A DNA stretch of 64,000 nt from Macrostomum hystrix (GCA_950097015.1 CATNEN010000018.1:1-64000); one strand, 5' to 3'. Numbered from the stretch's first letter, positions 1,705-52,567 are shown. The notes: generated by a model not told the origin, from the sequence alone. A program made the numbers and translations.

Positions 1705-2993
1705 ATGTTTCCCTTACTCACAATACTCACCGCTGTCCTCCTGTACCTCATGAACTCACTTCATTCCTCACACCACCGAGAAGACGCACAAGAACTCACC
1801 GACCAGGACCTCCTCGCAGCCATCAGAGACGACCGAGTGGAACCCGTTCAGCGATTCATTAACAGCGGCGGCAGCCTCGATACCTTCATCGCCTATGCTG
1901 ACTCATTCTTTACTCCAGCAATGCTCGCTTGCCGATTCGGAAGACATGAAATTCTCCTGAGACTCATCCGAGCCATTGCAGATGTAGATAAGCAGAACTG
2001 GAGAGGGGCGACAGCATTGCATATTGCATCAGCATATGGTCACCACCGACTGGTGAAATCACTCATCAAAGCACGAGCCGACGTCAATCTTCAAGAAAAT
2101 ACTGGCGCCTCACCTCTCTACATTGCATCACAGCAAGGCCATAACGACGTCGTCCACTCACTCATCAAAGCACGAGCCGACGTCAATCTTCAAGATAATA
2201 CTGGCGCCTCACCTCTCTACATTGCATCACAGCAAGGCCATAACGACGTCGTCCACTCACTCATCAAAGCACGAGCCGACGTCAATCTTCAAGAGAAAGT
2301 CATTGGCGCCTCACCTCTCTACATTGCATCACTAAATGGCCATAACGACGTCGTCCACTCACTCATCAAAGCACGAGCCGACGTCAATCTTCAAGAGAAA
2401 GTCATTGGCGCCTCACCTCTCTACATTGCATCACTAAATGGCCATAACGACGTCGTCCACTCACTCATCAAAGCACGAGCCGACGTCAATCTTCAAGATA
2501 ATACTGGCGCCTCACCTCTCCACATTGCATCACTAAATGGCCATAACGACGTCGTCCACTCACTCATCAAAGCACGAGCCGACGTCAATCTTCAAGATAA
2601 TACTGGCGCCTCACCTCTCTACATTGCATCACAGCAAGGCCATAACGACGTCGTCCACTCACTCATCAAAGCACGAGCCGACGTCAATCTTCAAGATAAT
2701 ACTGGCGCCTCACCTCTCTACATTGCATCACAGCAAGGCCATAACGACGTCGTCCACTCACTCATCAAAGCACGAGCCGACGTCAATCTTCAAGATAATA
2801 CTGGCGCCTCACCTCTCTACATTGCATCACAAAATGGCCACCTCAGTGTTGTCGAGTCACTCATGAAGGTCGTTCATAGCCCCGACTTGCTGACAGCTGC
2901 TCTGCGAATCGCCACGGAAGTTGGCCATGACCCAGTGGTTGACCTGCTGAGCCCTGGATCATCCGCGCCATTGCCTGAGGAGAAGCAAAACAG
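1705..2993 (+). CDS. Ankyrin-repeat exon (predicted exon 1 of ANK-cGLR fusion gene A); unspliced ORF ends at TAG 2995-2997 (430 aa)
   Basis: Hydrophobic N-terminus MFPLLTILTAVLLYLM. About 10 ankyrin repeats, 8 of type (D/E)NT/EKVI-GASPLYIAS-xx-GHNDVVHSLIKARADVNLQ. Ends in the phase-2 donor AACAG|GTAGGA. Confidence 0.92.
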
Positions 2994-3480
2994 GTAGGAG
3001 CTCCTGTTTCTTGTAAAAGTCACCTGAACAATCATAGATACTTCGGATTCTCTGAGTATTCAGACTCCAAATCTGATAGCTGAAGTTCGGAACTGATTGT
3101 TTTTGTGTTATTGTGTTATTGTTTTCTTGTTTTATTGTTATTGTTAAGGTTCTCACGAATACCTGCTGCTTTTACTTCGCATTGTTAAGAGCTGGCGAAT
3201 TTATAGCCAAAAGCCTCGAATTCACAACAATGACCACTAGGAGTAAAATAACGGAAAACTACGATAATAGTTAATAAATATGTCTGCTTGCGCCGAAGAT
3301 TATACCACAAGGATAGGAAATTGTTAGTGGCGCTGGTGTGCCGCCGGCCCTAGTTAGCAGTGGCGCCCTCAGAAGGCGAAAGACAGAACTTCCTAGTAGT
3401 TCTTATTGTCAATGCCTCTTTAGCCACAGACAGCAGACTCCACTTCAAAATTCTCAGTTTATGATTCGGATTTGATTGTG

Positions 3481-3663
3481 GAGGATTCAATATTACAGGC
3501 TTGGGATTCAATATTACAGGTTTGAGATTCAGTATTACAGGTTTGAGATTCAGTATTACAGGTTTGAGATTCAGTATTACAGGTTTGAGATTCAATATTA
3601 CAGGTTTGGGATTCAATATTACAGGTTTGGGGTTCAGTATTACAGGCTCGGGATTTAATATTA
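3481..3663 (+). repeat. 21-bp minisatellite (AATATTACAGGTTTGAGATTC), left part, interrupted by the LTR element
   Basis: 7-aa periodic spurious ORFs. The array resumes at 16120 and is uninterrupted in copy B at ~43165-43612. Confidence 0.95.
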
Positions 3664-4268
3664 TGATGTGGAGTGTACTTCGGAATCGAGTGGGGTTGTG
3701 AGCCAGCCAAATTTTTCCATTTTTTTAGCAAGTTAATAATCGCGACCCACATAGCAGCTGGCCGCAGAACACCATCATTAATCTTAGGGCCAGACTTGGG
3801 GCGGAGGTGAATTAAGTAGCCGCCGATTCCCTTTGTCTCGGATCTGTCTAGTCCCCTGTAGGAGTGACTGATCGCGGAAATAGCAATACTGTATGGACTA
3901 GTTTAGGTTATAATTCTCCTCCAAACCGCGATCAGATTGTCGGGATCACTCATGCGTTTAGAGTGAGCTTTAATTCTTCATGTCCCTCTTCTTTACTGTA
4001 ACCCGAGCCGAAGCTCGATTATGACCTTTCCCCCTTTAGATACATGTAACGACACTATAGGCAGGTCGGCGCCTGCGCTTCCCATATCCCGGCGGGATCA
4101 CAATCATTGGCCGACTGCCGGCAGACGCTCCTAGTGGGGCATCTGGCGATTCTCGCCGTCGCTTCAGTGGGCAATTGGGGTGGCATAATGCCGACCCGAT
4201 TCCTCGCTGACAGGCTGGCGAGCATGTGGGTTATTTTGATGAATGCGAGGTTGGCGGAGCTGCAGGAC

Positions 4269-4276
4269 TATTTAAG
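4269..4276 (+). promoter_or_regulatory. Putative LTR TATA box (TATTTAAG)
   Basis: GGACTATTTAAG is conserved in all three LTR variants (also 45758 and 59270) while the flanks diverge. Confidence 0.6.
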
Positions 4277-4791
4277 AGAGCGCGCTGCGCTGCCCCTAGG
4301 ACAACCTTCCCAGGACACCTTTTCCTTTTTTCCGGGAGCCTTTCCCGGCAACCTACCTTCGAACCTACCTTCCACCGACCTTCCCCCGGACCTACGTGTC
4401 CGCCCTTACAACCTTTTTCCCTTGTCCGGTCCCGGAACTCGGTCCGTGGACTCTCCCCCTTCTAGGCTAGCACCTAGTCCCTGAGCCTAAGGCTCCAGAT
4501 CATAGCAGCAGGCAACTACCTGCTAGTGCCCTTAAGCGCAAGCCACCTCTTTAGGTGCGCTCCAAATTGAGCCTTGAGCTCCCTGCAGTCTGGCCCCTTG
4601 CCAACTGTACTTAGCAATTCCTCACCTCTCCTCCCGTTCATTTGCATTCCCCCGCGAGATCGACGGCCTGCAGCCTGTCAACCAGCGTATTCAGATAAGT
4701 AACCCGCGCAGCGGACTGTTATTGCTATCCCTAAGGGATTTACTATTTAGCTAGTGGGTAAAAGGGCAAGGGCAGGGATTTGATTTAGCCT

Positions 4792-4797
4792 AATAAA
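4792..4797 (+). promoter_or_regulatory. Putative LTR polyadenylation signal AATAAA
   Basis: TAATAAA is conserved at the equivalent position in the solo LTR (~46245) and E3 (~59734), followed by T-rich sequence. Confidence 0.55.
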
Positions 4798-6059
4798 ACT
4801 ATTAATTCACCGCTTATCTAATTTATTGGGCAATTTAATAACAACTTAAATCCTTTTTACTATGCATTTCACTTTCTCTTATTTTATCGTTAGACAGCCC
4901 TCGATCATGAGTGGCTAACTTATTAGGGGGATGGGCTCTGGCGATGCCTAGCTGAAAGCTGCGGCAGGAGGATAACTGTGAGCGCGCATGAAAGTAATAA
5001 GGAGCTAGGGATTTGCGAGTAAAATGCGGAGCGTAGCATGTGTTTCTCTGCTAGGGGTGGGGGAATTCCTTGGCGGGTTTTTCCTCTCTTTCTGGCAGAT
5101 CAAGGAGTGCGTGTCAACCTCCCTTGTCAATTAATGTTTCCCTTCTGTTCCCCGCCTCTCGCTGCCGCCGCCATGGGAGCGAGGGGTGTGATCTAATAAT
5201 CACCGCTTGCATAATCACTCAGCCAGTGTTCTGCTCAATCTCTCCTGCCTCTGATTTCCTCATCTCACACAGATTCGGATTTGCTAGTTATTTAATGTGT
5301 AGGCTGCAATCTAATGTAAGGAATGTGTCTAATGTCTCATGAGTAGGATTCTGGCTATGGATTTCTCATTCGGGTTCGGAGTACCACCTTTCTAGACCAC
5401 TGTAGCGCAGTTTCAGGAATCCCCTTGTGAGGCGTGACTCGATCCATTCTGGGGTTCTCACCCTAGTCTAAAACGGAAGTTACAGAATGCTCTATTTTTC
5501 GGCTTGTCTAAGATCTGTGTGACAAACTGGGAGCTGCGAGCTCCGGGGACCCAAGTTCCCAAATGTCTGCGGTGGCAACGCAGGCGCATTGGGTGGTGGC
5601 GCTACCTTCGATCATTATCCGCTTTGCCGATAGCCTTTCCGCATTTCTAAGACAAGAGCCTAGGCCGAGTCGACCACTGCTACCAAAGTTGGGAGTCAGT
5701 TACGAACATGCTACTGATGACAGTAGGCTATCTAGCCCTGTCCTATTCGCTTGCGGGTAGTCCGACATCTATTTAGACTTTTAGCCGGTTTCGAGCACTG
5801 CTTGGGGTGGGCACGGCAGTCATGCCTGTGGCCTATGGGTTGGGTGGGACTGGCCAGCCTGAGGCCAATAGGACCACTCACTTGCATCCTTTGTACCGCC
5901 TCATCTCTCCCTTCATCTCTCCCTTCATCCCTCCCTTCGTCATCCCTCTCTGCGACAACTCGCGGCAGCAGCGATCGACCTCCGACTCCATCGTCGTTTT
6001 CCACACTCCTATCTTTCATGAGGGCGGTCATCGGCTAGCAAAGACCCGCACTATTTCAA

Positions 6060-6077
6060 TGGTGGCAGCGGTGGGAT
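6060..6077 (+). other. Primer-binding site complementary to the tRNA-Leu 3' end
   Basis: TGGTGGCAGCGGTGGGAT starts 1 nt after the LTR. It is the reverse complement of ATCCCACCGCTGCCA+CCA, the 3' end of eukaryotic tRNA-Leu(AAG/TAG). Confidence 0.88.
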
Positions 6078-7360
6078 CTAGAAATGGCGCGAAACGAACT
6101 TGAATTTCAATTATTAGTTTAGCGCCGCAGATTTCTGTGGTAGCTTGCCGAAAGGGCTCCTTCTGGATTTCATTTTCCGTATGCCGAAATCTTATCTCAG
6201 TTCTAGTGACTGTCAATTAATTTCCGAACAGTTGCAATTTGGTTTCAATTTAATTTAGGCTTTTGTTAGAGTTTCCAAAATTCTGATTAGTGACTTTCTA
6301 CTATGAGTAGGCTGTGTGAGCGGACTTCATGCTAGAGTGTCTTCGGGTTAGTGGCTGCTGCAGGAGTCGGGGACTGTCTGTGGGGTTTTCCCGCGTGATT
6401 GATCTGGGAGGGGCCATTCTTAACGAGGGACCGGGCAACGCTTTCGGCCTTCTAACCGAGCGAGGGGAGCCCCCGGCAATGCAGCCGGGAATCGATGACT
6501 CGCTGAGCACCGGGGATTGGTTCTCTTGGGCAGCATGCAGGCCTGCTTACGTGTACCTGATTCTGAAAGTGTCACATAGCTTTGACCAAGTCTGACTTTG
6601 GTGGGGAACAGTTAGGGAGGTGGGACTTCTGAGGGAGGTCTAGCGACCCCCGTGCCCGCCTCTCGAAACTGCCTACTTCAAGTATGGGCTAGAATTCGGT
6701 CGGCACGTTTTTCTAAGAGATTCTTTGAGGGGTTTTCTAAATGGGGTAGCCAGGCTTTAGCCATGGACTCCTATCCGAGCGAGATCCCAGGTATATCCCC
6801 CCTGGGCTTCCCAGTCTCGTTAATCGCGAGGGGGGCCCCCGGCAATGCAGCCGGGAACCGATGACTCCCTGAACGAGTCGGGGATTATCCCTTCTCTGAG
6901 TATCTTATTGAGGCGTGTACTTTCCAAGGTAGGGTGATAGGCTGTTGCAGGCGCAAGCTTGCAGTAGTACTGACCCCGCCGTACCTATAGTGCAACAGTC
7001 CGCTATAGGGTTGCAGAACGAGTGCTAAGTTAAAACCTAGACTTCTATGTCCCAAACTTAAGTGCGCGCAAACAGTTGTCAGTAGCCAAGGCTGGAAGCA
7101 AAGCTAGCCAGGGCCCTGGGCCCTTTTCTCTCTCACTGATCTTTGATCCTTTTTGCGGTAGGGTTGCTCTCTAGGAGTAGGGAATTCGCCGCATCATTAA
7201 CCAGGGCTGGATTTGACAGCTCAGGCTCGTTTCTTTTCCCCCCTGCACGATCTCCAGTCGTGATCTGTGTTTTCCTTTTCCTCCCCTCCCCCATTGTTGC
7301 ATTAGCGACAGACCCCCCTCTTTTTCATTCGCAAAACCCTCATCCCTCTTTTGGCCGAAA

Positions 7361-10300
7361 ATGTCCGACCAGGAGGATGAGGTCGTCGAGGTGATCGGCG
7401 CCCCCCGTCCAACCAAAAGTAGGGCTGCCTCCGCAGAAAGGTGCCAGGAAAGGCGCCCTCTGCCTGCAACTGCAGCCCCGGGTACTCCTAGAACGGACCC
7501 GTGGGAGGTCCATCGGTGCCTCCTCGAACTGCTGCAGTCCGTAAGGTCCGACTTGCAATCGCTTAACGGCCCGGTGTACTCCCCGGTGTTGCGGCACTCG
7601 GTGGCCACCCAGACGGAAGGTGAACGACCGCAGGTGGTCAGGCCGGCGTATGGTTTCCGAATCCCGGTAGAGCCATTCGACCAAGGTCGCTCCGACATTG
7701 CCTCTTGGATGCTTCGACTGGAGGCAAAGTTTCAATTTGAGGAGGTCACCGACGATAGGGCCAGGAATGTGACCTGTTACAGCCTGTTGCCGGAAGAGAT
7801 GCAGTTAGAAAGTCTCCTGACGATTGACTTTGATGGCCCCTTTCAGCAGTTCCGGGCCAGGTTGCTAGACGGCTGTCTGGATTCCAGGTTGCCGGTAACT
7901 AAGAGGCGCACGGTAGAGCGACTGCAACCACGTTCGGGGGAGGCTCCCGAGGTGTTCTTAGTGCGGCTGAGGAAGCTCGTGGAGTGGGCTTATGCTGACT
8001 ATCCAGAGGACTGGCGGCAGAACGAGCTCAAACGGCTCTATCTACAGAACGGCCACTTCGATTCCAAATTCGCTTTTGAAGCGTTCTCGGCGAGGGACTG
8101 GACCCCGGAGGGCACGGTGTTTGAGCAGCGGAGGTCCGAGGAGGCTGACCGCGTCGCGCACGAGATTGAAAGCGAGCAACTAAGTTCAGCCTCCGAGGAC
8201 GCTTCGCTGTATCAGAGCTGTGCGTCCCCAGTGGGCAGCCCTCCTCGAGCCGCGGTCAGGGCGGTAGAGGCGGCAGACGAAGCTGGCCCCGCAGAATTCC
8301 GAAATGGAGTGGAGAAGGTGGGAGTCGGATCCCAACTAACGGCTGAACAGGAAAGGCAGCTGGGAGACTTGTTGCGGGCCAACGCCGACCTGTTCGCCGA
8401 CCAGGAGGAGGACCTGACGGTCACGACAGTGGTCCAGCATGAGATCACGCTGACCGACCCCCGGCCCGTGAAGTCGGCGCCGCGGAGGATTCCTCAGGCC
8501 TACCTCGAGGAGGTGCAGCAGATGGCCAGGGAGTGGTTGGAGACAGGGAAGGCCAGTCACTCGGCCAGTCCTTACTGCTCGCCGCTGGTGCTGGTGAAAA
8601 AGAAGGACGGCTCCCTCCGCGTCTGCATTGACTATAGGGAGCTCAACGAGCGGAGTGTGTCAGAGGTCACACCGCTGCCGCGCATCGACGAACTGCTGGC
8701 ATCGTTGCATGGGTCCTCCTATTTCACCACCCTGGATCTCCGCAGCGGGTACCACCAAGTGCCTATGCATGAAACTTGCAAACCATACACCGCATTCGCC
8801 GTCCCGGGAGTCGGGTTACTGCAGTGGAATGTGATGCCATTCGGGCTGAAGGGCGCACCAAGCACGTTCTCTCGTTTGATGAACCTGGTGCTGGCCGGCG
8901 TGCCGCAGCATGAGGCCATGGCGTACATCGACGACGTCATCGTGCACTCTGCTACCTTCGAGGAACACCTAGTCCGGCTCCAGAAGACATTCGACCGTCT
9001 GCGGGCGGCTAACCTGAAGATGAAGCCGTCCAAGTGCTTCCTTGCACAGCCCGAGATCTCTTTCCTAGGGCACACGGTGTCGGGAGCGGGCATCGCGACG
9101 GACCCTCATAAGACATGTGCGCTGTCCACGTGGCCACGACCGCGTACAGCCACCGACGTCCGCTCATTTTTAGGCGCGGTGGGCTACTACCGTGATTTCG
9201 TGCCGGAGTACAGCTGCCTCTCGGCGCCTCTTTGCGAACTCACCAAAAAGGGCCTTGTGGATGTGGAGCCCCTCTGGGACGACCGGCACGAGACCGCGTT
9301 CGAAGAACTGAAGGCGCGGATGGTCGAGGCGCCCGTGCTGGCCCACCCAAGTTTCGAGAAGGGCGCAGGGCGTTTCATACTCGACTGTGACGCCAGCCTG
9401 GAGTCCTTGGGGGCGGTGTTGAGCCAAGAACAGCCGGACGGGACGGAGAGGGTCTTGGCCTATGGCAGTAAGGCATTGTCCGCATCTCAGCGGAACTATT
9501 GCGTCACAAAACTAGAAATGCTGAGCCTCGTGTACTTCACCAGGAAGTACAGGTATTACCTACTGGGCCGCCGGTTCCTGGTCCGAACCGACCACAGCTC
9601 CCTCCAGTGGCTGAGGAGCTTTAAGGAGCCAACTGGCATGTATGCTCGGTGGGTGCAGCACCTGTCGCTATACGACTTCGACCTGGAGTATAGGAAGGGC
9701 AGCCTCCATACCAACGCCGACGCATTGAGTCGCCGGCCTAGACAGAGACACGGAGATTGCCCCGTTTGCCGGCCGTTGGAGCCCGGCAGTGAGGAAGAGA
9801 GTGAGGACGAAGGCGTGGTGGTAAACGCCGTCGCGGCGCAGGCAGTCATGGAACCGCCGCTGCAGCCCGAGGAATTGCTGGCCCAGCAGGTCGCCGACCC
9901 GGTGATCCATTGGATACTGCAAGCTAAGGTCAACGGTTTGGCCGCCCCAGACCCGGCCGCGGTCCCGGAGTTGAACGCCAAGCAGAAGGTCGCTTTGAAG
10001 AAGCTGTTGCCCTACTGGGACCTCTTGAGGGTGGAGGAGCAGCTGCTCAAAATCCAGGTGCACGCTCCCCCCCGGCCGCCGCTGTGGCTGCTCCCAGCAA
10101 GCCTCGACGAACAGGCTTTCCACTCGTGCCATAACGGGAGCTTAGCCGGGCATTTCGGGCGTCAAAAGACCCTGGCGCGTGTCGCCCAGCGGTTTTGGCG
10201 ACCAGGACTCCGCGCTTCGATGCAGAAGCTGTGCGCGCAGTGCCACGCCTGCCTGTGCAGCAAGAAGGGCCGCAGAGCTCAGGCTCCGCCGCAGCCATGG

Positions 10301-11506
10301 GAGAAAAGTCCGAAGTTCTCACGGATCCACCTAGACTTTGTCGGTCCCCTCGGCCGCGGCGGTCAGAGCATCCTCACGATCGTGGATAGCTACTCCGGCT
10401 GGGTCGAGGCGTTTCCTGTGGCCAACCAAACCGCTAAGGCAGTCACGAGGATCCTGTCCACAGAGTTCATCCCACGGTTCGGGGTGCCCGATTGGATCCA
10501 CAGTGACCAGGGCGCTCAATTCGAGTCGAGCCATTTCCGCGACTTTTGTCGGAAGCTGGGCATACGGAAGACCAGGACCACGCCCTACCACCCACAAGGC
10601 AACGGCATGGCGGAATCCCAGCACCGCACCCTGAAGGCACTGTTGACAACGGCCGTGGGCCGACACCACGAGAAGTGGAAGGCTCACCTGGGCGCTTGCC
10701 TTGCCGCCATGAGGTCCGCCGAACACTCCTTGACCGGATTTTCACCATTCTTCTTGGTGTATGGGCAGGAAGCCCGGCTGCCCGTAGACGTGGCACTGGC
10801 CGCGCCGGCCGAAGCACCTGCGCCCCATCATTACGCGGAGCAGCTCTTGCAGAACCTGGAGGAGGCTCAAGTGCAGCTGCAGGAGCAATTTAACCAGAAG
10901 CTCCAGGCGCAGGCCCGAATGGGGGACAGGCAACGAAAGACGGAGCTCGAGGTAGGGGCCGTTGTGTACCTGGCCCGCCATCAGATCGAAGGCTGGGAGA
11001 TTCCCAAATTTCACCAGGCCTACTCGGGACCATGGAAGGTGGTCGCGAAGCCGGGCGTGTCGATTTACGACGTCGCGCCGGTGACCCCGCAGCCCGGCCG
11101 ACAACAGACGTACCGGGTGCACCGCGACAACTTGCGAGCTGTTCCCAAGGAGGCCGGGGAAGTCCGACCAACCCAGGAGGCGGGCGAGAGGCAACCAAGG
11201 CAGGTGCAGCGTGGGCCCGGGCGGCCGCCCGTGAGGCCCAGGCCAGCCTCACCCCCGCCGAGGATGTTGAGGGCGGAAAGCGAGTCCGAGGACCAGTGGA
11301 GCGACGGCTCCTCTGACTCCGAGGAAAGCTGGTTGGGCCCCGAGGAACCGCCGCCGCAAAGAGTGGACGAGGGTCCGCGAGTGTTGAGGCCCCGGAATGG
11401 CATCCGACCCCCCGAGCGCTGGGGCTATGTCCGGAGGATTCTCCTCGGTGAACCCGAGTCCGACCCGGAGTCCTGGGCGAGGACCAACGGCCACGACCCG
11501 GGCTAG
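7361..11506 (+). CDS. gag-pol: Single-ORF Gag-Pol, 1381 aa: capsid-like gag, RT, RNase H, integrase with GPY/F; no recognisable protease or CCHC knuckle
   Basis: RT motifs VKKKDGSLRVCIDYRELN, LDLRSGYHQV, MPFGLKGAP and YIDD. RNase H motifs LDCDAS and TDHSSL. Integrase HHCC (H..GHFG..CAQCHAC), IHLDF, HSDQG, NGMAE and YSGPW. Confidence 0.96.
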   Translation: MSDQEDEVVEVIGAPRPTKSRAASAERCQERRPLPATAAPGTPRTDPWEVHRCLLELLQSVRSDLQSLNGPVYSPVLRHSVATQTEGERPQVVRPAYGFRIPVEPFDQGRSDIASWMLRLEAKFQFEEVTDDRARNVTCYSLLPEEMQLESLLTIDFDGPFQQFRARLLDGCLDSRLPVTKRRTVERLQPRSGEAPEVFLVRLRKLVEWAYADYPEDWRQNELKRLYLQNGHFDSKFAFEAFSARDWTPEGTVFEQRRSEEADRVAHEIESEQLSSASEDASLYQSCASPVGSPPRAAVRAVEAADEAGPAEFRNGVEKVGVGSQLTAEQERQLGDLLRANADLFADQEEDLTVTTVVQHEITLTDPRPVKSAPRRIPQAYLEEVQQMAREWLETGKASHSASPYCSPLVLVKKKDGSLRVCIDYRELNERSVSEVTPLPRIDELLASLHGSSYFTTLDLRSGYHQVPMHETCKPYTAFAVPGVGLLQWNVMPFGLKGAPSTFSRLMNLVLAGVPQHEAMAYIDDVIVHSATFEEHLVRLQKTFDRLRAANLKMKPSKCFLAQPEISFLGHTVSGAGIATDPHKTCALSTWPRPRTATDVRSFLGAVGYYRDFVPEYSCLSAPLCELTKKGLVDVEPLWDDRHETAFEELKARMVEAPVLAHPSFEKGAGRFILDCDASLESLGAVLSQEQPDGTERVLAYGSKALSASQRNYCVTKLEMLSLVYFTRKYRYYLLGRRFLVRTDHSSLQWLRSFKEPTGMYARWVQHLSLYDFDLEYRKGSLHTNADALSRRPRQRHGDCPVCRPLEPGSEEESEDEGVVVNAVAAQAVMEPPLQPEELLAQQVADPVIHWILQAKVNGLAAPDPAAVPELNAKQKVALKKLLPYWDLLRVEEQLLKIQVHAPPRPPLWLLPASLDEQAFHSCHNGSLAGHFGRQKTLARVAQRFWRPGLRASMQKLCAQCHACLCSKKGRRAQAPPQPWEKSPKFSRIHLDFVGPLGRGGQSILTIVDSYSGWVEAFPVANQTAKAVTRILSTEFIPRFGVPDWIHSDQGAQFESSHFRDFCRKLGIRKTRTTPYHPQGNGMAESQHRTLKALLTTAVGRHHEKWKAHLGACLAAMRSAEHSLTGFSPFFLVYGQEARLPVDVALAAPAEAPAPHHYAEQLLQNLEEAQVQLQEQFNQKLQAQARMGDRQRKTELEVGAVVYLARHQIEGWEIPKFHQAYSGPWKVVAKPGVSIYDVAPVTPQPGRQQTYRVHRDNLRAVPKEAGEVRPTQEAGERQPRQVQRGPGRPPVRPRPASPPPRMLRAESESEDQWSDGSSDSEESWLGPEEPPPQRVDEGPRVLRPRNGIRPPERWGYVRRILLGEPESDPESWARTNGHDPG

Positions 11507-13705
11507 GGAGAAGTAGTTTCCACTGCGGGCGCCCCAGAGCGCTCACTCGGCCGTGCTAGGCGACCAAGCCCCACTGGAATTTCGTGGCAAAGCCCCCGCC
11601 CTTCCGTTACTTCTCCCCTTTAGTAAAATGCGCACTCTGCACTTTTTGCTCCTTTTCTCCTATTGTGCACGCCTTCCTTTTTCATCAAAGCCGCCTTGGC
11701 ACAAAAATCTCATAAAAATTCTTATAATTTAGCCAGAAACCCAAAAACATACCTAGTGGGGTGAAATTCCCCTAGTACTTTTTCGCATGAGATGCCTATC
11801 TAAATGTAGCAATCTAGGGCATGCACCTTCTTTTCTCAAAGAGCATTTTACTTTTATTCGCACCACATCATGCATGGCACCTTTGCCTTATCTTGCTTCA
11901 TATTGGTGGGTCTGTGGGAGTTCAATTTAGGACAACTTCTAACTTAGGAGGGACACCAACCCGCTAAAGTGAGCGGGGTGGTATGCCATGGGAAATTCTA
12001 TGTTTCTTTAAGGGAGGGAAGGCGGTTTCAAATCAAAAAGGCCATCTCGGCGCCAAACCCTCTTAAAAACTCATATAAACTAATCAAAATCCAAAAAAAC
12101 ATACTTAGTGGGGTGAAACTCCCCTAGTACGAATTTTCGCATGAAATATTTTCGTAATAACTGCCGCAAACTAGGGTTCGCACCTACTTTTCGCAAACTT
12201 GCTTATCTTACATGTTCTCTATGCTTGGTTTCGGGAGTTTAGCTAAACCGGCTTCTATTTAGGGGGTATACCAACCCGCTAAAGTGAGCGGGGTGGTATG
12301 TTTCGGGAGTTTTTTTCTTAATGTTTGTTTAAAGAGTGGGCGGTTGTGAATCAAGAGGCCGGTAGGATCAGGTATTCAAATTCTAGGGGAGACAATCTGG
12401 CTGTTTCAATGAGCGACAGATTTCAAAATGATAATTTTTCTTTTGTTAGGGCTAGAAAAGACAAAAAGAAACATTATTTGGGGAGCCAGAAGTTAGCAGC
12501 TGGGCATTCAAATCTAGGTACCTAGGCGGGGACAGAATAGTGTTGAAAATGGCAGTCTAGATAATTTCCAATTTAACCGATCTCTAACCAGGGCAGGGTT
12601 TTTCACAGTTTCGGGTCAGGGTCAATTTCATTTTTTTGGATAATTAGGCGTGCCGTGGGTAGGGGGGGACTCTGGTTATTCTAATTCTTATGCAATAACC
12701 CTCGCAATTATCCTTAATAACCGGCCTTGGGGGGCCGAGTAGAAGTCAAATAACTCACCTTTCTTCTTCAGACTGCGGCTGGGCCATAGCACAAGGAGCA
12801 GAGCACGTATTTAGCTAATCGGGCGACGCAGGCTAGGTGGCGATTGCAGGCAAGCTAGCGGTAGTTTAGGTGTTTGTTTGGGAGATAAAGAGGCTTGAGG
12901 TTAATGGGGCGTCAAGTGTTTGCTTTTATAGGGCTAATTTAGGGAGACGTGGCGGTCTAACCGCCAGCCAATGGGAGCAAAGTGGGAATTCCGGGCAGGA
13001 CCAGTTTAGGGGGCTCATGGTAACAGTTTAGTTGTTGGGGCCCTGACCTTTTCGGTGAGGAGACACCTCGGCCGGCAACAGCATCACAAGCGGCCTGAGC
13101 AGCGGTTTCCCCAGCTGCGACCAGCTGCAGCGCCGATTGGGCCGCGCGCAACGGCTAGGCAACCGGCCCGACGAGAATTTTCGGGCCCGGCCAGCTGAAA
13201 ACACCTGGGCGCGCGGCGAATCAGAGGCTACCACGGCCCGGCAACGGAATCGGGAAGGCGCGAACGGACCGACCAACCCGGAGCCACCTGGGGAAGAGCA
13301 CGGCCGGACCCTCGGACTTAAGGAGAAAACGGCCGGAGCCTCCCGGGATTGCGCAACCGAGACCAAGCCGGGCAGGGAAAGACGGGGACAGCTGCAGCCA
13401 CCTGGAGGAGAAGGCGAGCCGGGACACGGCACCCCGGGACAGCGAGAACAACTCTAACTCAGCCGGAATGCGCACCCACCTCCCCTCAGGACTCTATCCC
13501 TTAGTCGCTAGGGGCGCCGACCTTTTACACTCTCGCACAAAATCTATTTATAGCAGTATTGTTACGTACGATAACTTAGGATTTCTTCTCTAGCGGTTTT
13601 CTTCTTAGGATTCTTTACGGTATGCAGTAGGGTAATGTAAGTTTTTGCCCCCTCGATTCGCGGGACACCCCACTACTAACAGTAAGCACGTAAGTGTCTT
13701 ACGTG

Positions 13706-13724
13706 AAAGTGAGCAAGGGCGGTG
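13706..13724 (+). other. Polypurine tract of E1
   Basis: AAAGTGAGCAAGGGCGGTG directly abuts the 3' LTR. It is preceded by the perfect inverted repeat CACGTAAG-tgt-CTTACGTG (13687-13705). Confidence 0.7.
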
Positions 13725-16119
13725 TGATGTGGAGTGTACTTCGGAATCGAGTGGGGTTGTGAGCCAGCCAAATTTTTCCATTTTTTTAGCAAGTTAATAA
13801 TCGCGACCCACATAGCAGCTGGCCGCAGAACACCATCATTAATCTTAGGGCCAGACTTGGGGCGGAGGTGAATTAAGTAGCCGCCGATTCCCTTTGTCTC
13901 GGATCTGTCTAGTCCCCTGTAGGAGTGACTGATCGCGGAAATAGCAATACTGTATGGACTAGTTTAGGTTATAATTCTCCTCCAAACCGCGATCAGATTG
14001 TCGGGATCACTCATGCGTTTAGAGTGAGCTTTAATTCTTCATGTCCCTCTTCTTTACTGTAACCCGAGCCGAAGCTCGATTATGACCTTTCCCCCTTTAG
14101 ATACATGTAACGACACTATAGGCAGGTCGGCGCCTGCGCTTCCCATATCCCGGCGGGATCACAATCATTGGCCGACTGCCGGCAGACGCTCCTAGTGGGG
14201 CATCTGGCGATTCTCGCCGTCGCTTCAGTGGGCAATTGGGGTGGCATAATGCCGACCCGATTCCTCGCTGACAGGCTGGCGAGCATGTGGGTTATTTTGA
14301 TGAATGCGAGGTTGGCGGAGCTGCAGGACTATTTAAGAGAGCGCGCTGCGCTGCCCCTAGGACAACCTTCCCAGGACACCTTTTCCTTTTTTCCGGGAGC
14401 CTTTCCCGGCAACCTACCTTCGAACCTACCTTCCACCGACCTTCCCCCGGACCTACGTGTCCGCCCTTACAACCTTTTTCCCTTGTCCGGTCCCGGAACT
14501 CGGTCCGTGGACTCTCCCCCTTCTAGGCTAGCACCTAGTCCCTGAGCCTAAGGCTCCAGATCATAGCAGCAGGCAACTACCTGCTAGTGCCCTTAAGCGC
14601 AAGCCACCTCTTTAGGTGCGCTCCAAATTGAGCCTTGAGCTCCCTGCAGTCTGGCCCCTTGCCAACTGTACTTAGCAATTCCTCACCTCTCCTCCCGTTC
14701 ATTTGCATTCCCCCGCGAGATCGACGGCCTGCAGCCTGTCAACCAGCGTATTCAGATAAGTAACCCGCGCAGCGGACTGTTATTGCTATCCCTAAGGGAT
14801 TTACTATTTAGCTAGTGGGTAAAAGGGCAAGGGCAGGGATTTGATTTAGCCTAATAAAACTATTAATTCACCGCTTATCTAATTTATTGGGCAATTTAAT
14901 AACAACTTAAATCCTTTTTACTATGCATTTCACTTTCTCTTATTTTATCGTTAGACAGCCCTCGATCATGAGTGGCTAACTTATTAGGGGGATGGGCTCT
15001 GGCGATGCCTAGCTGAAAGCTGCGGCAGGAGGATAACTGTGAGCGCGCATGAAAGTAATAAGGAGCTAGGGATTTGCGAGTAAAATGCGGAGCGTAGCAT
15101 GTGTTTCTCTGCTAGGGGTGGGGGAATTCCTTGGCGGGTTTTTCCTCTCTTTCTGGCAGATCAAGGAGTGCGTGTCAACCTCCCTTGTCAATTAATGTTT
15201 CCCTTCTGTTCCCCGCCTCTCGCTGCCGCCGCCATGGGAGCGAGGGGTGTGATCTAATAATCACCGCTTGCATAATCACTCAGCCAGTGTTCTGCTCAAT
15301 CTCTCCTGCCTCTGATTTCCTCATCTCACACAGATTCGGATTTGCTAGTTATTTAATGTGTAGGCTGCAATCTAATGTAAGGAATGTGTCTAATGTCTCA
15401 TGAGTAGGATTCTGGCTATGGATTTCTCATTCGGGTTCGGAGTACCACCTTTCTAGACCACTGTAGCGCAGTTTCAGGAATCCCCTTGTGAGGCGTGACT
15501 CGATCCATTCTGGGGTTCTCACCCTAGTCTAAAACGGAAGTTACAGAATGCTCTATTTTTCGGCTTGTCTAAGATCTGTGTGACAAACTGGGAGCTGCGA
15601 GCTCCGGGGACCCAAGTTCCCAAATGTCTGCGGTGGCAACGCAGGCGCATTGGGTGGTGGCGCTACCTTCGATCATTATCCGCTTTGCCGATAGCCTTTC
15701 CGCATTTCTAAGACAAGAGCCTAGGCCGAGTCGACCACTGCTACCAAAGTTGGGAGTCAGTTACGAACATGCTACTGATGACAGTAGGCTATCTAGCCCT
15801 GTCCTATTCGCTTGCGGGTAGTCCGACATCTATTTAGACTTTTAGCCGGTTTCGAGCACTGCTTGGGGTGGGCACGGCAGTCATGCCTGTGGCCTATGGG
15901 TTGGGTGGGACTGGCCAGCCTGAGGCCAATAGGACCACTCACTTGCATCCTTTGTACCGCCTCATCTCTCCCTTCATCTCTCCCTTCATCCCTCCCTTCG
16001 TCATCCCTCTCTGCGACAACTCGCGGCAGCAGCGATCGACCTCCGACTCCATCGTCGTTTTCCACACTCCTATCTTTCATGAGGGCGGTCATCGGCTAGC
16101 AAAGACCCGCACTATTTCA
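13725..16119 (+). repeat. E1 3' LTR (2395 bp)
   Basis: Copy of 3664-6058. No difference was found in the segments compared by eye. Confidence 0.96.
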
Positions 16120-16420
16120 ATTACAGGTTTGGGATTTAATATTACAGGTTTGGGATTCAATATTACAGGTTTGGGATTCAATATTACAGGCTCGGGATTT
16201 AATATTACAGGTTTGGGGTTCAGTATTACAGGTTTGGGATTCAATATTACAGGCTAGGGATTTAATATTACAGGTTTGAGATTCAATATTACAGGCTCGG
16301 GATTTAATATTACAGGCTCCGGATTTAATATTACAGGTTTGGGGTTCAATATTACAGGTTTGGGATTAAATGTTACAGGTTCGGGATTAAATGTTACAGG
16401 TTTGAGATTCAATGTTACAG
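16120..16420 (+). repeat. 21-bp minisatellite, right part
   Basis: ATTACAGGTTTGGGATTTAAT units resume in register after the TSD. Confidence 0.95.
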
Positions 16421-16562
16421 AAATATTGGATTTAGATTTCTTAAAATTGACACATTCTGGCTGTTTAGTGTATTATTCGCAACAAATCTGCCTACTAATC
16501 TCTTAAAATTCATATATTTTTCTCATTCCTCGTTTCAGCTGTAGTTTTAGTTTCAATCCCAG

Positions 16563-16654
16563 TGAAACTCAGCACTGCCGCCTCCTCTCACCCTTCAGAG
16601 CCTCCCAGCCTCACTGAACCTCAGCACTGCCGCCTCCTCTCACCCTTCAGAGCC
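16563..16654 (+). repeat. 52-bp repeat (2 units), each containing a 3' splice-site-like CCTCCTCTCACCCTTCAG
   Basis: Unit ACTGAAACTCAGCACTGCCGCCTCCTCTCACCCTTCAGAGCCTCCCAGCCTC. Copy B has 7 units. Confidence 0.9.
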
Positions 16655-17000
16655 GCACCCAGCGACGCAGAGCTGAGCCAGCAGCTGCACTCCAAGCTCT
16701 CTCAGTCGGGATTCGTGGACTCCAGAGCCGCCTTGCAGATCGCTGTGGCTGACGTCTTGCAGGATGTCCTCAGGAAGAGATGGAACTTTAAGAACTGGTT
16801 CGCTGTGGGCAGCTTCTCTGAGGCCTGGGGCAACAGCCTGGTCTCTCTGGATGGCAGAACTGACATCGACTCTGACATCGATGTTATTCAGCTGATTCCA
16901 GGAAGGCCGATTCACCCGAGAGATGTGTGCGAGTGCGACCGAGTGGAGGCTGCTCAGACAGTGGAGCTCAGCAATGGCCACATCCTGAGCTCCGGATTCG
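16651..17000 (+). CDS. Predicted exon 2 of gene A: N-terminal part of the Mab-21/cGAS-like NTase
   Basis: WFAVGSFSEAWG...DIDSDIDVI carries the hGS and DxD NTase motifs. Phase-2 acceptor CCCTTCAG|A at 16650/1. Phase-1 donor TTCG|GTGAGA at 17000/1. Confidence 0.82.
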
Positions 17001-18151
17001 GTGAGAATTTCCTGTCAGAGACTGTCGGGATGGCTGGGACAAGAATTGAACATGAGTTTGGCTTGCTCATCTTCTTTGGCTTTCTAAAGCAAACAACAAA
17101 CAAGGAAAGCAAACAAATGTTCAGTCCAGGTTTGAAATGCAGAGCCAGAGCAAGAAATTTCCCAGCAAAAATGTAAACCCTGATTTTTCTTTCGGCGCGC
17201 TTCCTCTGGGAACCAAACAGAGGCTTAGCGCTCCTCGCTCAGTGTACTCAGTGAATAGTGATGCTATATTATGTATTCATTGTACATCCTGATATTTATA
17301 AGCCAAAATCTAATTTCCTATATTCGCTATTAACTGTTAGTTAACTAGCAATGTAAGCCCATCTTCGGGGAGCCCAGACGATTCAATCAAGTTTCTCTTT
17401 GTTTCTTAGGCTCGCAATACTTTCACAGTCACAGGTGTGCAAAATTACAGTTTTTGAGGTGACCGCCCCAGTCCATGGACTGAACCGTTGTACACAGCTT
17501 TTGGAAGCGTCGTACAAACGCTACGGCTGGGCCATTGCAAATTTCGGTTATTTCTATTATATTATATTCTATTGCCGCTTTTACAGAATTAGTTTTCTGT
17601 GATTCTGAAATTATGCCAATCAATGTCCATTGATTTTCAACAATATTCCGAACAGCCAATTCTAACTAGCCATATAGTAGCTAGTTATCCAGTAGACAGG
17701 AAAATTATCCTAATTTATGTGGGCGGGAAAACCCCCGCCGCAGGAAAATCCCATCGAATTTCCAGTCCAGATTTGAATCTCGGCCTGAGGGAACGATGCT
17801 TGTCCAAGAGCTGGAATCATAACCTCGTATTTATTCAGCTCAGCCAGCTGAAGGTTACAGTAGAAATTTGAGGGGGCTGGTGACTCCCCAGTACAAAGAC
17901 TGAAGAGCTGTATACAGTACTCACAAAATACTCATAAGAAACTAAAGAAGCAAGGAAGAATTGAAAATAATCGTGCACGTGCTGCCCTCCGTAGGGGGCA
18001 AAAGTTTCTAGTCTGCACTAAATTTTCATATAAATCGCAGCTACAAACCATCTTTGCACAATTTTTTTATATTATCGAGAAATAGTTCTGTGTCTATCAA
18101 CTTGAAATCTGATGGCCTTTTGCATATTTCTTGCATTTCCTTTTTCTCCAG

Positions 18152-19887
18152 CTTCCAACCCAGCCTCCACTCAAGATGGCTCCGCCCTGAGACCGTCTGT
18201 GGACGAAGTCACCGCCCGCCGCCTCTGCCGCTACCCTCCCATCGCGCCGCTGCAGCCACCAAGAGTCTCCAACTCCAACATCCCCCAGTCCGTGCTGCAG
18301 TCGCTCCAGCGAGACCTCACCTCTGCCTCATCGCCCTGTCACGTGGTGCACGCAGCTCCTCCCGGAATGGGGGGCCAGCAGCTCCGAGTGAGCAGCAGCT
18401 TCCTGGAGAGGCGACTGCTGCGGAGTCTCAGCACTCTGCAAGGCCAGCTGTTCGTCACACTCAAGTGGCTGCTGAAGAAGAAAATCTCAAACGTCGGCTT
18501 CAAGTCCTATCACGCAAAGACCGTCACGTTCCGAATGCTGGAGGAGACACCTGCTGAGCAGTGGAAGCCGGAGAATCTCGTGACTCTCACGACACGCTCG
18601 CTGCAGATTTTGCTTGACGGTGTGGAGAGCGGCTGCAGATCAGACACACCTGACGGTCGGATCCTGGAGCACTTCTTCCTGAGCGATGCCGCTGTGTACC
18701 TGAAGGGCTTGAAGTCAGCTGAGAGAGTGAGCGAAGCGTTGAATCGGGCAGCCGGCGCATTGAGAGACGCCATGGCTGAGCTGCCTCAGCTGCTGCTGCA
18801 GTTCGAGGACAGTCTGCGACCCGTCACCGACTCGGGCCGATTCCACTTCCAACCGTTCCTCATCCTGCCTCTACTCAATGACCGACCCGTGTCAGAAGCC
18901 AAGACATGCGAGTTCCACGAGATCTACGACATCGTGAGAGAGTCCGTGCTTCGTCTGTCCGATGGAGACCGCAGCCCGCAGTCCCGAGAGAGTCTCGCAG
19001 AGCTGATCAACAAACTGCCAGACTGCGCCCGATCAGCGCGAGAGTCTCTCAGAGCGCTGGCCTGCCTGAAGTTCGGCGACAGACGCACTGCTGAAAAAGT
19101 TGTGAGCGACTGCGGGCCGTTCAGTGCGAGCAGAGGCATCGATTGGGGAGCTGAGAGGTCGGCGAGTGAGGCCACTGCGGACTTTGTGTGGCAGCACCTG
19201 AAGAGCCGAGACTCCGCCTGGAAATTCTGCTTGGAGTTTGACGAGCGACCGAAGCTGCCGATTCAGCACGAAGTCTTTGCCGACTGCTTTCCGCTGCAGA
19301 TGATAAACTACAGCACATACTTCTACCTGAACTTTGATGCTCTGCTGCGGGCTCTTTGCAATGAGCTGACAGTAGCAGGAGACCGGAGCGATCAGGACTG
19401 GATCCGGGATGTGGCTCAGAGGGAGGATGCGGATGAGCAGGAGCTGCTGGTGGCTGCGGCGATATGCGGAGATCTGGAGCTGCTGCGGCGGCTGCGCAGA
19501 AGAATCACTCACGAGCTGTGCCGGCTGCCAGGGTGGCTGCAGCAGAAGATTGAGAGGCTGAGCAGTCAAGGTGAAGATCGCCAAGACCAAGGTGAAGATC
19601 GCCAAGACCAAGGTGAAGATCGCCAAGACCAAGGTGAAGATCGCCAAGACCAAGGTGAAGATCGCCAAGACCAAGGTGAAGATCGCCAAGACCAAGGTGA
19701 AGATCGCCAAGACCAAGGTGAACATCGCCAAGACCAAGGTGAAGATCGCCAAGACCAAGGTGAACATCGCCAAGACCAAGGTGAAGATCGCCAAGACCAA
19801 GAGATTCAAGAGATTGAGACATCTGGCGAAGAGCCGCCGCAGCAAAAGGCAAAAAGGCTGCAGAGAAAGCGAAAATCGGTCGAGTAA
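18152..19887 (+). CDS. Predicted exon 3 of gene A: Mab-21/cGLR core and C-lobe plus repetitive acidic tail
   Basis: Phase-matched acceptor TTTTTCTCCAG|CT. VDEVTA supplies the candidate third acidic residue. [20 protein letters not shown] and LEHFFL are typical Mab-21 family motifs. Exons 1-3 total 3375 nt, an exact multiple of 3. Confidence 0.85.
19567..19797 (+). repeat. Coding 21-bp repeat, 11 x QGE(D/H)RQD
   Basis: CAAGGTGAAGATCGCCAAGAC units lie in frame. Copy B has only ~1.5 units before its stop. Confidence 0.95.
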
Positions 19888-41924: not shown

Positions 41925-43012
41925 ATGTTTCCCTTACTCACAATACTCACGGCTGTCCTCGTGTACCTCATGAACTCACTTCATTCCTCACACCACCGAG
42001 AAGACGCACAAGAACTCACCGACCAGGACCTGCTCGCAGCCATCAGAGACGACCGAGTGGAGCCCGTTCAGCGATTCATTAACAGCGGCTGGAGCCTCGA
42101 TACCTTCATCGCCTATGCTGACTCATTCTTTACTCCAGCAATGCTCGCTTGCCGATTCGGAAGACATGAAATTCTCGTGAGACTCATCCGAGCCATTGCA
42201 GATGTAGATAAGCAGAACTGGAGAGGGACGACAGCATTGTGGATGGCATCACAATATGGTCACCACCGACTGGTGAAATCACTCATCAAAGCACGAGCCG
42301 ACGTCAATCTTCAAAGAAATACTGGCTCCTCACCTCTCTACATTGCATCACAAAATGGCCATAAGGACGTCGTCCACTCACTCATCAAAGCACGAGCCGA
42401 CGTCAATCTTCAAGAGAAAGTCTATGGCCGCTCACCTCTCTACATTGCAACACAATATGGCCACAAGGACGTCGTCGACTCACTCATCAAAGCACGAGCC
42501 GACGTCAATCTTCAAGAGAAAGTCTATGGCCGCTCACCTATCTACATTGCATCACAATATGGCCATAAGGAGGTCGTCCACTCACTCATCAAAGCACGAG
42601 CCGACGTCAATCTTCAAACAAATACTGGCGAGTCACCTCTCTACATTGCATCACAGCAAGGCCATAAGGACGTCGTCAACTCACTCATCAAAGCACGAGC
42701 CGACGTCAATCTTCAAAGAAATACTGGCTTCTCACCTCTCAACATTGCATCACAATATGGCCATAAGGACGTCATCGGCTCACTCATCAAAGCACGAGCC
42801 GACGTCAATCTTCAAACAAATACTGGCTCCTCACCTCTCTACATTGCATCACAAAATGGCCACCTCAGTGTTGTTGAGTCACTCATGAAGGTCGTTGATA
42901 GCCCAGAATTGCTGGAAGCTGCTCTGCGAATCGCCACGGAAGTTGGCCATGACCCAGTGGTTGACCTGCTGAGCCCTGGATCATCCGCGCCTCTGCCTGA
43001 GAAGCAGAACAG
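41925..43012 (+). CDS. Ankyrin-repeat exon (predicted exon 1 of gene B); unspliced ORF ends at TAG 43014-43016 (363 aa)
   Basis: Paralogue of 1705-2993 with 6 rather than 8 internal modules. Phase-2 donor AACAG|GTAGGA. Confidence 0.92.
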
Positions 43013-43760: not shown

Positions 43761-44112
43761 GTGAAACTCATCACTGCCGCCTCCTCTCACCCTTCAGAGC
43801 CTCCCAGCCTCACTGAAACTCAGCACTGCCGCCTCCTCTCACCCTTCAGAGCCTCCCAGACTCACTGAAACTCAGCACTGCCGCCTCCTCTCACCCTTCA
43901 GAGCCTCCCAGCCTCACTGAAACTCAGCACTGCCGCCTCCTCTCACCCTTCAGAGCCTCCCAGCCTCACTGAAACTCAGCACTGCCGCCTCCTCTCACCC
44001 TTCAGAGCCTCCCAGCCTCACTAAACCTCAGCACTGCCGCCTCCTCTCACCCTTCAGAGCCTCCCAGCCTCACTGAAACTCAGCACTGCCGCCTCCTCTC
44101 ACCCTTCAGAGC
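43761..44112 (+). repeat. 52-bp repeat, 7 units, each with a CCCTTCAG acceptor-like site
   Basis: CCCTTCAG ends at ~43797, 43849, 43901, 43953, 44005, 44057 and 44109. Confidence 0.93.
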
Positions 44113-44459
44113 CGCACCCAGCGACGCAGAGCTGAGCCAGCAGCTGCACTCCAAGCTCTCTCAGTCGGGATTCGTGGACTCCAGAGCCGCCTTGCAGATC
44201 GCTGTGGCTGACGTCTTGCAGGATGTTCTCACGAAGAGATGGAACAATGACGACTGGTTCGCTGTGGGCAGCTTCTCTGAGGCCTGGGGCAACAGCCTGG
44301 TCTCTCTGGATGGCAGAACTGACATTGACTCTGACATCGATGTTATTCGGCTGATTCCAGGAAGGCCGATTCACCCGAGAGATGTGTGCGAGTGCGACCG
44401 AGTGGAGGCTGCTCAGACAGTGGAGCTCAGCAATGGCCACATCCTGAGCTCCGGATTCG
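44110..44459 (+). CDS. Predicted exon 2 of gene B (Mab-21/cGAS-like NTase, GS and DxD motifs)
   Basis: 350 nt, the same length as in gene A. WFAVGSFSEAWG...SDIDV. Donor TTCG|GTGAGA. Confidence 0.8.
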
Positions 44460-47958: not shown

Positions 47959-49415
47959 CCTCCAACCCAGCCGACACTCAACGAGGCTCCGCCCTGAGAC
48001 CGGCTGTGGATTACGTCACCGCCCGCCGCCTCTGCCGCTACCCTTCCATCGCGCCGCTGCAGCCACCAAGAGTCTCCAACTCCAACATCCCCCAGTCCGT
48101 GCTGCAGTCGCTCCAGCGAGACCTCACCTCTGCCTCATCGCCCTGTCACGTGGTGCACGCAGCTCCTCCTGGAATGGGGGGCCAGCAGCTCCGAGTGAGC
48201 AGCAGCTTCCTGGAGAGGCGACTGCTGCAGAGTCTCAGCACTCTGCAAGGCCAGCTGTTCGTCACACTCAAGTGGCTGCTTAAGAAGAAAATCTCAAACG
48301 TCGGCTTCAAGTCCTATCACGCAAAGACCGTCACGTTCCGAATGCTGGAGGAGACACCGGCTGAGCAGTGGAAGCCGGAGAATCTCGTGACTCTCACGAA
48401 ACGCTCGCTGCAGATTTTGCTTGACGGTGTGGAGAGCGGCTGCAGATCAGACACACCTGACGGTCGGATCCTGGAGCACTTCTTCCTGAGCGATGCCGCT
48501 GTGTACCTGAAAAGCTTGAAGTCGCCCACATCAGCTGAGAGAGTGAGCGAAGCGTTGAATCGGGCAGCCGGTGCATTGAGAGACGCCATGGCTGAGCTGC
48601 CTCAGCTGCTGCTGCAGTTCGAGGACAGTCTGCGACCCGTCACCGACTCGGGCCGATTCCACTTCCACCCGTTCCTCATCCTGCCAGTTCTTTGGCTCAC
48701 ACCTGTACCAGAAGCCAAGACATGCGAGTTCCACGAGATCTACGACATCGTGAGGGAGTCAGTGCTTCGTGTGTCCGATGGAGACCGCAGCTCGCAGTCC
48801 CGAGAAAGTCTCGCAGGGCTGATCGACAAACTGCCAGACTGCGCCCGATCAGCGCGAGAGTCTCTTAGAGCGCTGGCCTGCCTGAAGTTCGGCGACCGAC
48901 GCACTGCTGCGAGAGTTGTGAGCGACTGCGGGCCGTTCAGTGCGAGCAGAGGCATCGATTGGGGAGCTGAGAGGTCAGCGAGTGAGGCCACTGCGGACTT
49001 TGTGTGGCAGCACCTGAGGAGCCGAGACTCCGCCTGGAAATTCTGCCTTGTGTTTGACGAGCGACCGAAGCTGCCGATTGAGCACGAAGTCTTTGCCGAC
49101 TGCTTTCCGCTGCAGATGATGAACTACAGCACATACTTCTACCTGAACTTTGACGCTCTGCTGCGGGCTCTTCGCAATGATCTGACAGGAGCAGTAGACC
49201 GGAGCGATCAGGACTGGATCCGGGATGTGGCTCAGAGGGAGGATGCGGATGAGCAGGAGCTGCTGGTGGCTGCGGCGATATGCGGAGATCTGGAGCTGCT
49301 GCGGCGGCTGCGCAGAACAATCACTCACGAACTGTGCCGGCTGCCAGGGTGGCTGCAGCAGAAGATTGAGAGGCTGAGCAGTCAAGGTGAAGATCTCCAA
49401 GACCAAGGTGAATAA
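47959..49415 (+). CDS. Predicted exon 3 of gene B (Mab-21/cGLR core and C-lobe)
   Basis: Acceptor TTTCTCCAG|CC is in frame with ORF 48006-49415. [20 protein letters not shown]. Exons total 2895 nt (964 aa plus stop). Confidence 0.85.
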
Positions 49416-52565: not shown

Positions 52566-52567
52566 TG

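Follow-up and report, generated by a model that had tools for sequence, protein, structure and literature searches.

The 64,000-nt stretch of the Macrostomum hystrix genome analysed here (GCA_950097015.1 CATNEN010000018.1:1-64000, in the following the window; the contig is referred to as C18) contains two tandem genes, copies A and B, in which an exon encoding a hydrophobic N-terminus and an ankyrin repeat (ANK) array is followed by two exons encoding a predicted cGAS/Mab-21 nucleotidyltransferase (NTase), as found in cGAS-like receptors (cGLRs). The coordinates of the exons, of the parts of the last exon in copy A and of the repeats and insertions within the introns are given in Table 1. Taking the results below together, it is likely that A and B are neighbours in a tandem array of at least six genes, which belong to a Macrostomum-restricted and strongly expanded cGLR subfamily and would carry out a ligand-switched second-messenger step.

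Table 1. Features of copies A and B in the window (positions counted from the first nucleotide; exon sequence in upper case, intron sequence in lower case; LTR, long terminal repeat).
Feature	Position	Strand	Description
Copy A exon 1	1705..2993	+	1289 nt; hydrophobic N-terminus and ankyrin array; ends in phase 2, AAACAG/gtaggagc
Copy A exon 2	16651..17000	+	350 nt; cacccttcag/AGCCGC ... GATTCG/gtgagaat; NTase spine helix, strand 1 (G-S), strand 2 (D-I-D); no Met codon
Copy A exon 3	18152..19887	+	ttttctccag/CTTCCA; stop TAA
Copy A exon 3, first part	18152..18816	+	Variable loop, third catalytic Asp (VDEV), Mab-21 C-lobe helices
Copy A C-terminal helical (TPR-like) domain	18817..19566	+	Lineage-specific, 250 aa; modelled from its own sequence
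Copy A tail	19567..19887	+	11 acidic heptads QGEDRQD (21-bp tandem repeat), then basic end and stop
Copy B exon 1	41925..43012	+	N-terminus as in A; ankyrin array two units shorter; ends in phase 2
Copy B exon 2	44110..44459	+	350 nt; NTase N-lobe with G-S and D-I-D
Copy B exon 3	47959..49415	+	Third Asp (VDYV), C-lobe, C-terminal helical domain; reading frame stops after about 1.5 heptads
52-bp tandem array upstream of copy B exon 2	43762..44113	+	Seven identical 3' splice-site motifs
LTR retrotransposon in copy A intron 1	3664..16119	+	12,456 nt; LTRs 3664-6058 and 13725-16119
Dispersed 2.3-kb repeat in copy B intron 2	45155..47477	+	Sharp ends; loose contig ends at 45154 and 47488

Gene models and splicing

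Models of both genes were rebuilt from the window. The three exons of copy A (1289 + 350 + 1736 = 3375 nt) form an open reading frame (ORF) with a terminal stop only, encoding 1124 amino acids (aa), and those of copy B (1088 + 350 + 1457 = 2895 nt) likewise have a terminal stop only and encode 964 aa. All introns in A and B are of the GT..AG type and the donor and acceptor contexts are near-identical between the copies. An earlier note on this DNA had claimed that the splice phases (2, then 1) join the ANK and Mab-21 ORFs in both copies, with totals of 3375 and 2895 nt and an exon 2 of 350 nt in each, and both the phases and the arithmetic were reproduced from the sequence. The junction peptides are ...KQNR/AAPSDAEL... 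(exon 1/2) and ...LSSGF/ASNPA... (exon 2/3), and the nucleotide sequence specific to the exon 1/exon 2 junction of copy A is GAGGAGAAGCAAAACAG/AGCCGC. The ankyrin assignment of exon 1 was confirmed by Pfam Ank_2 matches with E values of 3e-120 (A) and 2e-109 (B), and the array in copy A comprises about 9-10 units of 33 residues.

Annotated homologues from Macrostomum lignano are continuous across both junctions (...RPAPSDNDLSQQLH... and ...GHVLSPGYASRPA...), and many of the M. lignano gene models are fusions. Given that exon 2 lacks a Met codon, the catalytic N-lobe is not translatable without exon 1. The stand-alone ORF of 591 aa that covers exon 3 begins in intronic sequence and does not contain the strands with G-S and D-x-D, which together with the missing Met codon in exon 2 means that no separate active Mab-21 protein is possible.

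Public contigs from three runs of one study were compared with the copy B region (42850-48450). The exons were covered whereas the introns were near-uncovered, which is RNA-like behaviour: the depth was about 0 at 43411-43784 (with a maximum of 3.6, in one run, in a more 5' part of the same intron), at 44533-44719 (no more than 0.27 as far as 44906) and at 47525-47898; the 2.3-kb repeat in intron 2 was covered. One contig joins 43012>44110 (GT..AG), in two further contigs exon 2 is preceded by an overhang of 16 nt that matches the end of copy B exon 1 exactly, and contigs also join 44459 to the start of exon 3. In addition, a loose contig end connects exon 2 to a CTTCCA-type exon 3 start, as present in A and in the downstream copies C, D, E and F. 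The two joints expected for copy B, 43012>44110 and 44459>exon 3 start, were therefore both seen in public contigs, but these contigs could not be assigned to one copy: B, D and E do not differ at the end of exon 1 and 6 mismatches were present in one joined contig, so that the RNA evidence bears on the family and on B-type copies, not on one particular locus. For the family and the B/D/E-type copies, ANK and NTase were found in one transcript and in one frame.

Upstream of exon 2 the 3' splice site is repeated within a 52-bp tandem array, with seven motifs in copy B and two in copy A (16561-16650). In copy B only the last acceptor (44110) keeps the frame, and the six upstream acceptors add 52n nt and lead to a stop after 6 codons (RASQPH, then stop), i.e. 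to an ANK-only product. If these acceptors were mainly used, ANK and Mab-21 would for the most part be separate products and the fusion a minor isoform, and the low contig depth within the acceptor array (43785-43971) fits such a scheme. We consider this very improbable, since the exon 1/exon 2 joints seen in the public contigs use acceptor 44110, the phase is kept in six tandem copies, exon 2 has no start codon and the M. lignano gene models are so often fusions. Together, the splice sites, the conserved phases, the continuity of the homologues and the spliced public contigs support, for each copy, a single spliced gene made up of the ANK and the Mab-21 ORF.

Predicted enzyme domain and terminal parts

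Pfam Mab-21_C matched exon 3 below threshold (17.7-18 bits, cut-off 24.1), and in exon 2 there was no Pfam match, including none to the Mab-21 N-terminal model; some homologues carry precomputed PF20266 matches. A profile of the NTase and C-terminal region retrieved cGAS chains from the PDB (E 7e-6), the match covering the conserved C-lobe helix. The window core being split by an intron, the fold was predicted for the closest homologue, a 69%-identical M. lignano protein (P0001:271-871, 601 residues), which gave a model with a mean predicted local distance difference test (pLDDT) of 75.7 and a predicted template modelling score (pTM) of 0.75, the loops of the catalytic N-lobe having a low pLDDT of 40-60. 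In a Foldseek search of the PDB with this model, the top 50 matches were all cGAS, MAB21L1 or cGLR structures, with weak scores (E 6e-3 or worse). Alignment with VIA-align gave Z 13.1-13.3 to mouse cGAS, MAB21L1, MB21D2 and Sp-cGLR1 over about 250 residues and both lobes (for mouse cGAS, 4o6a, Z 13.3 and a root-mean-square deviation of 4.4 over 249 residues, with the match within model residues 1-337), so the Mab-21 part, by way of its homologue, is predicted to take the cGAS/Mab-21 NTase fold.

The G-S, D-x-D and third Asp, described in the earlier note as intact, correspond to G53, S54, D75, D77 and D134, which are at least 90% conserved in an alignment of 98 sequences (including about 29 distant Mab-21 proteins) and are all present in both window copies, with the third Asp in the context VDEV (A) or VDYV (B). 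In the model, strands were found at residues 48-52, 77-82 and 132-137. The arrangement is canonical: strand 1 is followed by G-S, strand 2 opens with D-x-D and the third Asp lies within a strand. Modelling and conservation thus support an intact NTase fold with intact catalytic residues. The proteins could also be real fusions in which a non-enzymatic Mab-21 fold serves as scaffold, as in MAB21L1/2, and the ankyrin and TPR-like parts make them adaptors. The fold score to MAB21L1 equals that to cGAS, Pfam support for Mab-21 is weak, the N-lobe was modelled poorly and the 15 active enzymes of Li et al. include none from a flatworm, all of which is compatible with an adaptor. Nevertheless we regard a loss of catalysis as quite unlikely, because at least 90% of the 98 family and distant sequences, as well as the two window copies, keep the catalytic residues, whereas no functional active site is predicted in Mab21L1/2/3 (Li et al. 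2023, PMC9980059), and because such conservation across at least 90 fast-diverging paralogues is hard to explain without catalysis.

The Mab-21 C-lobe is followed by a 250-aa domain that is conserved across the family, mostly helical and TPR/HEAT-like; the model from copy A's own sequence had a pLDDT of 90.6 and a pTM of 0.90. No specific relative of this domain was found by Pfam on 53 members, the best match of a PDB profile search was the N-terminal domain of TRIF (E 0.46-1.1, regarded as a chance match), a Foldseek search of the PDB gave at most a generic TPR/HEAT-like helical-repeat resemblance, the best Z in an exhaustive VIA-align comparison was 7.6 (background) and template modelling scores in the ESM Atlas were below 0.5. 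The acidic heptad QGEDRQD that follows (21-bp coding repeat, 19567-19801 in A) ranges from about 1 to 11 units among the array copies, with 11 in A and about one in B, and the very C-terminus differs between the array copies, a basic end being found in A and D only.

At the other end, the first 19 residues (MFPLLTILTAVLLYLMNSL; 1705-1761 in A, 41925-41981 in B) are hydrophobic in 6/6 copies (Kyte-Doolittle 1.85) and not clearly present in the closest M. lignano homologue. A hydrophobic N-terminus is unexpected for an ankyrin-cGLR protein; judging from its composition it may be a membrane anchor or a signal peptide, or the true start may lie upstream.

Tandem array, insertions and family expansion

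When the next 140 kb of the contig beyond the window were examined, four further copies were found downstream, with starts at C18:85292, 103996, 129848 and 181914, bringing the array to at least six. In 6/6 copies the length of exon 1 is 2 mod 3, in spite of a range of 1088-1676 nt, and exon 2 is 350 nt with the same splice-site contexts. This conservation of phase and length across six copies is more than chance, and so is the fusion pattern. Intact ORFs (964-1158 aa) were found in 5/6 copies. Copy C (C18:85292-90940) has the longest ankyrin exon (1676 nt) and a 1-nt deletion early in exon 3 (GCCCTAGACC vs GCCCTGAGACC) that breaks the frame, and it is therefore probably a young pseudogene.

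Intron 1 of copy A is 13.7 kb long. It was reported earlier to hold a retrotransposon of about 12.5 kb, and an LTR element of 12,456 nt was indeed found there, within a 21-bp minisatellite that is also present in copy B. Its LTRs (2,395 nt, TG..CA) are 100% identical and it is flanked by the target-site duplication ATTA. An ORF of 1381 aa (7361-11506) encodes reverse transcriptase, RNase H and integrase; a protease domain was not among the Pfam matches of this ORF. In the domain order, the TG..CA ends and the 4-bp target-site duplication the element resembles Ty3/Gypsy LTR retrotransposons, from which it differs by its unusually long LTRs. The 2.3-kb repeat, which is inserted in intron 2 in copy B only, is present in the genome in at least 40 full-length copies (82-96% identity); neither a long ORF nor an LTR or terminal inverted repeat was detected in it.

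An insertion of this size in copy A might disrupt transcription or splicing, in which case copy A would be decaying or silenced and only the others (B, D, E) would make the fusion mRNA. This would agree with the fit of the spliced contigs to exon 1 ends of the B/D/E type, with the frameshift already present in array member copy C and with ratios of non-synonymous to synonymous substitution rates (dN/dS) in the NTase core of up to 1.3-1.9 for pairs including A. Splicing of introns longer than 10 kb that contain transposons is, however, common, the ORF of copy A is fully intact (1124 aa) and the contig end with the CTTCCA-type exon 3 start has the form found in A, C, D, E and F; moreover, the identity of the LTRs indicates that the insertion is very recent, so that decay would not show yet. 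On balance, silencing of copy A appears doubtful. The dN/dS values of 1.3-1.9 were based on few substitutions between array copies with probable gene conversion, and were for this reason dropped as evidence of positive selection.

Throughout the 220-Mb genome at least 94 exon-3-like loci were found, mostly with open frames, including the C18 array and a cluster on contig C3 at 10.2-11.9 Mb. Among 1.84 billion representative proteins, 84 match at E < 1e-30 and every named one that was looked up is from M. lignano; beyond those 84 proteins the matches are limited to the Mab-21 core. Only M. lignano proteins are found among the significant database relatives of exon 3 (best identity 69%), and the window copies are at most 69-72% identical to any database protein.

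Amino acid differences between the copies cluster in three spots of the NTase: the end of the spine helix (RKRWNFKNW vs TKRWNNDDW), the loop before the third Asp (ASNPAxTxxG, of which public contigs contain further variants) and the residue after that Asp (VD-E/Y/Q/R-V). The variable patches lie at 16780-16800 and 18165-18215 in copy A and at 44236-44262 and 47972-48015 in copy B.

The intergenic space consists almost entirely of satellite arrays (20029-28224, 28540-35305, 36081-39360 and 49674-57582) with units of 22/44, 16, 22, 14 and 47 bp. The satellites recur in the same order after copy B, which indicates that they belong to the unit that was duplicated. A long CT-rich microsatellite lies ahead of each copy, 1.5 kb for A (within 1-1704) and 0.9 kb for B (within 40849-41924), and is followed by a conserved stretch of about 150 nt that contains CAGCCAAT and ends at the ATG; this stretch might serve as a promoter element or as an acceptor region for trans-splicing. 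The output of a promoter/terminator scan was rejected, as it uses a bacterial consensus that does not apply here.

Proposed function and comparison with known systems

A genome search with Pfam STING_LBD (LBD, ligand-binding domain) gave one near-threshold locus at C2:9104028-9105038 (L001:997-2010, -), with 25-25.6 bits against a cut-off of 27 and an ORF E value of 1.4e-5. The ORF begins GEAFAWNFAFTFLRLILPKL, close to the first helix of the STING LBD, and belongs to a family with about 12 loci, of which seven form a cluster on contig C2, with paralogues at C2 8.97-9.08 Mb and on contigs C7, C39 and C38. When a profile of 10 of the paralogues was compared with the PDB, the best match was STING (8efm, E 1e-3), mainly over the first LBD helix, and NEMO coiled-coil chains matched the later part (E 0.011-0.028). 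A protein homologue search found nothing at E <= 0.001, which says little given the limits of the word index. From their sequences, these loci are candidates for a receptor counterpart of the expanded cGLR family.

The following working scheme is proposed. Each mRNA joins exon 1, with the hydrophobic N-terminus and an ankyrin array of variable copy number, to exon 2 with the catalytic N-lobe and to exon 3 with the third catalytic Asp, the Mab-21 C-lobe, the lineage-specific TPR-like domain and a variable acidic tail. The resulting protein would be inactive at rest. A ligand, probably not long nucleic acid, would act via the ankyrin array, the C-terminal helical domain or both and switch on the synthesis of a nucleotide second messenger, presumably a cyclic dinucleotide, which could then be read by the divergent STING-like family encoded elsewhere in the genome. 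It is reasonable to view the ankyrin array as a putative protein-sensing module.

Several points weigh against this scheme. Besides the sub-threshold Mab-21_C score, the missing Pfam match in exon 2 and the low confidence of the modelled N-lobe, the predicted fold is that of a homologue rather than of the window's own spliced protein, and the loop between G-S and D-x-D is about 10 residues longer than in cGAS. The run type of the public contigs is not on record as RNA and the contigs are not assignable to one copy. The STING_LBD score lies just below the Pfam threshold (25 vs 27 bits), and no flatworm enzyme is among the 15 characterised in depth in PMC9980059, which come from insects, anemones, molluscs, hydras and corals.

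More tentatively, the at least 90 loci might constitute a fast-diversifying repertoire whose members differ in the number of ankyrin repeats, in binding-face residues and in the hypervariable NTase patches, with the ANK and TPR-like parts sensing protein or other non-nucleic-acid ligands and signalling through a co-expanded STING-like family. If this were true, the repertoire would be set in a phylum in which most members have reportedly lost cGLR signalling. M. lignano is amenable to RNA interference and transgenesis. Given the array and the genome-wide expansion, Macrostomum is a tractable setting in which to ask which non-nucleic-acid ligands cGLRs sense, a question left open by the published screen. 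At the level of annotation, reading single ORFs would yield an "ankyrin protein" plus a "Mab-21 protein" devoid of catalysis in place of the actual product, an ANK-cGLR-TPR-like fusion.

The combination of ANK and Mab-21, for which the earlier note had called for a search, is already catalogued. In the survey of Li et al. 2023 (PMC9980059), 87% of the cGLRs are single-domain proteins, some carry ankyrin or TPR modules, ANK-cGLR fusions are a listed domain class and most Platyhelminthes are without cGLRs. Table S2 of that paper lists Ank_2 in the M. lignano proteins PAA86972.1, PAA45980.1, PAA58690.1, PAA68676.1 and PAA68216.1, and according to its Table S3 the screen included cloned M. lignano NTase parts. 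A literature search for Macrostomum together with cGAS or Mab-21 found no dedicated study. The fusion type and the Macrostomum family have accordingly been known since 2023, and the window copies are new paralogues or orthologues. The architecture as such is known; of note are the tandem arrangement with at least six phase-conserved copies, the C-terminal domain particular to this lineage, the family of STING-like candidates and the variable NTase patches.

The window copies share with the ANK-cGLRs of Li et al. an N-terminal ankyrin array and a cGAS-like NTase in one polypeptide, and the NTase of PAA86972.1 (PMC9980059 Table S3) has the same GSFxEAWGNSL...D.D.DV motif, which places it in the same family. 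They differ from these proteins by the hydrophobic N-terminus and the acidic heptad tail, and the C-terminal helical domain, the tandem array and a flatworm ligand or product are not described in that paper. With vertebrate cGAS, Drosophila cGLR1 and coral Sp-cGLR1 they have in common the bilobal Mab-21 NTase fold (Z 13, homologue model), and with the characterised cGLRs the G-S, the [D/E]x[D/E], the third acidic residue and the C-lobe helix motif Y-H-x-K-T. In contrast to these enzymes, to which the identity is about 13-18%, the window family has a longer loop between G-S and D-x-D and adds ANK and TPR-like domains, and its NTase core has an isoelectric point (pI) of about 7.2, whereas nucleic-acid-sensing cGLRs have been linked with a pI >8.5 (PMC9980059). 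Finally, MAB21L1 and MB21D2 match the fold equally well (Z 13.2, homologue model), but the window proteins, unlike Mab21L1/2/3, keep the full catalytic triad.

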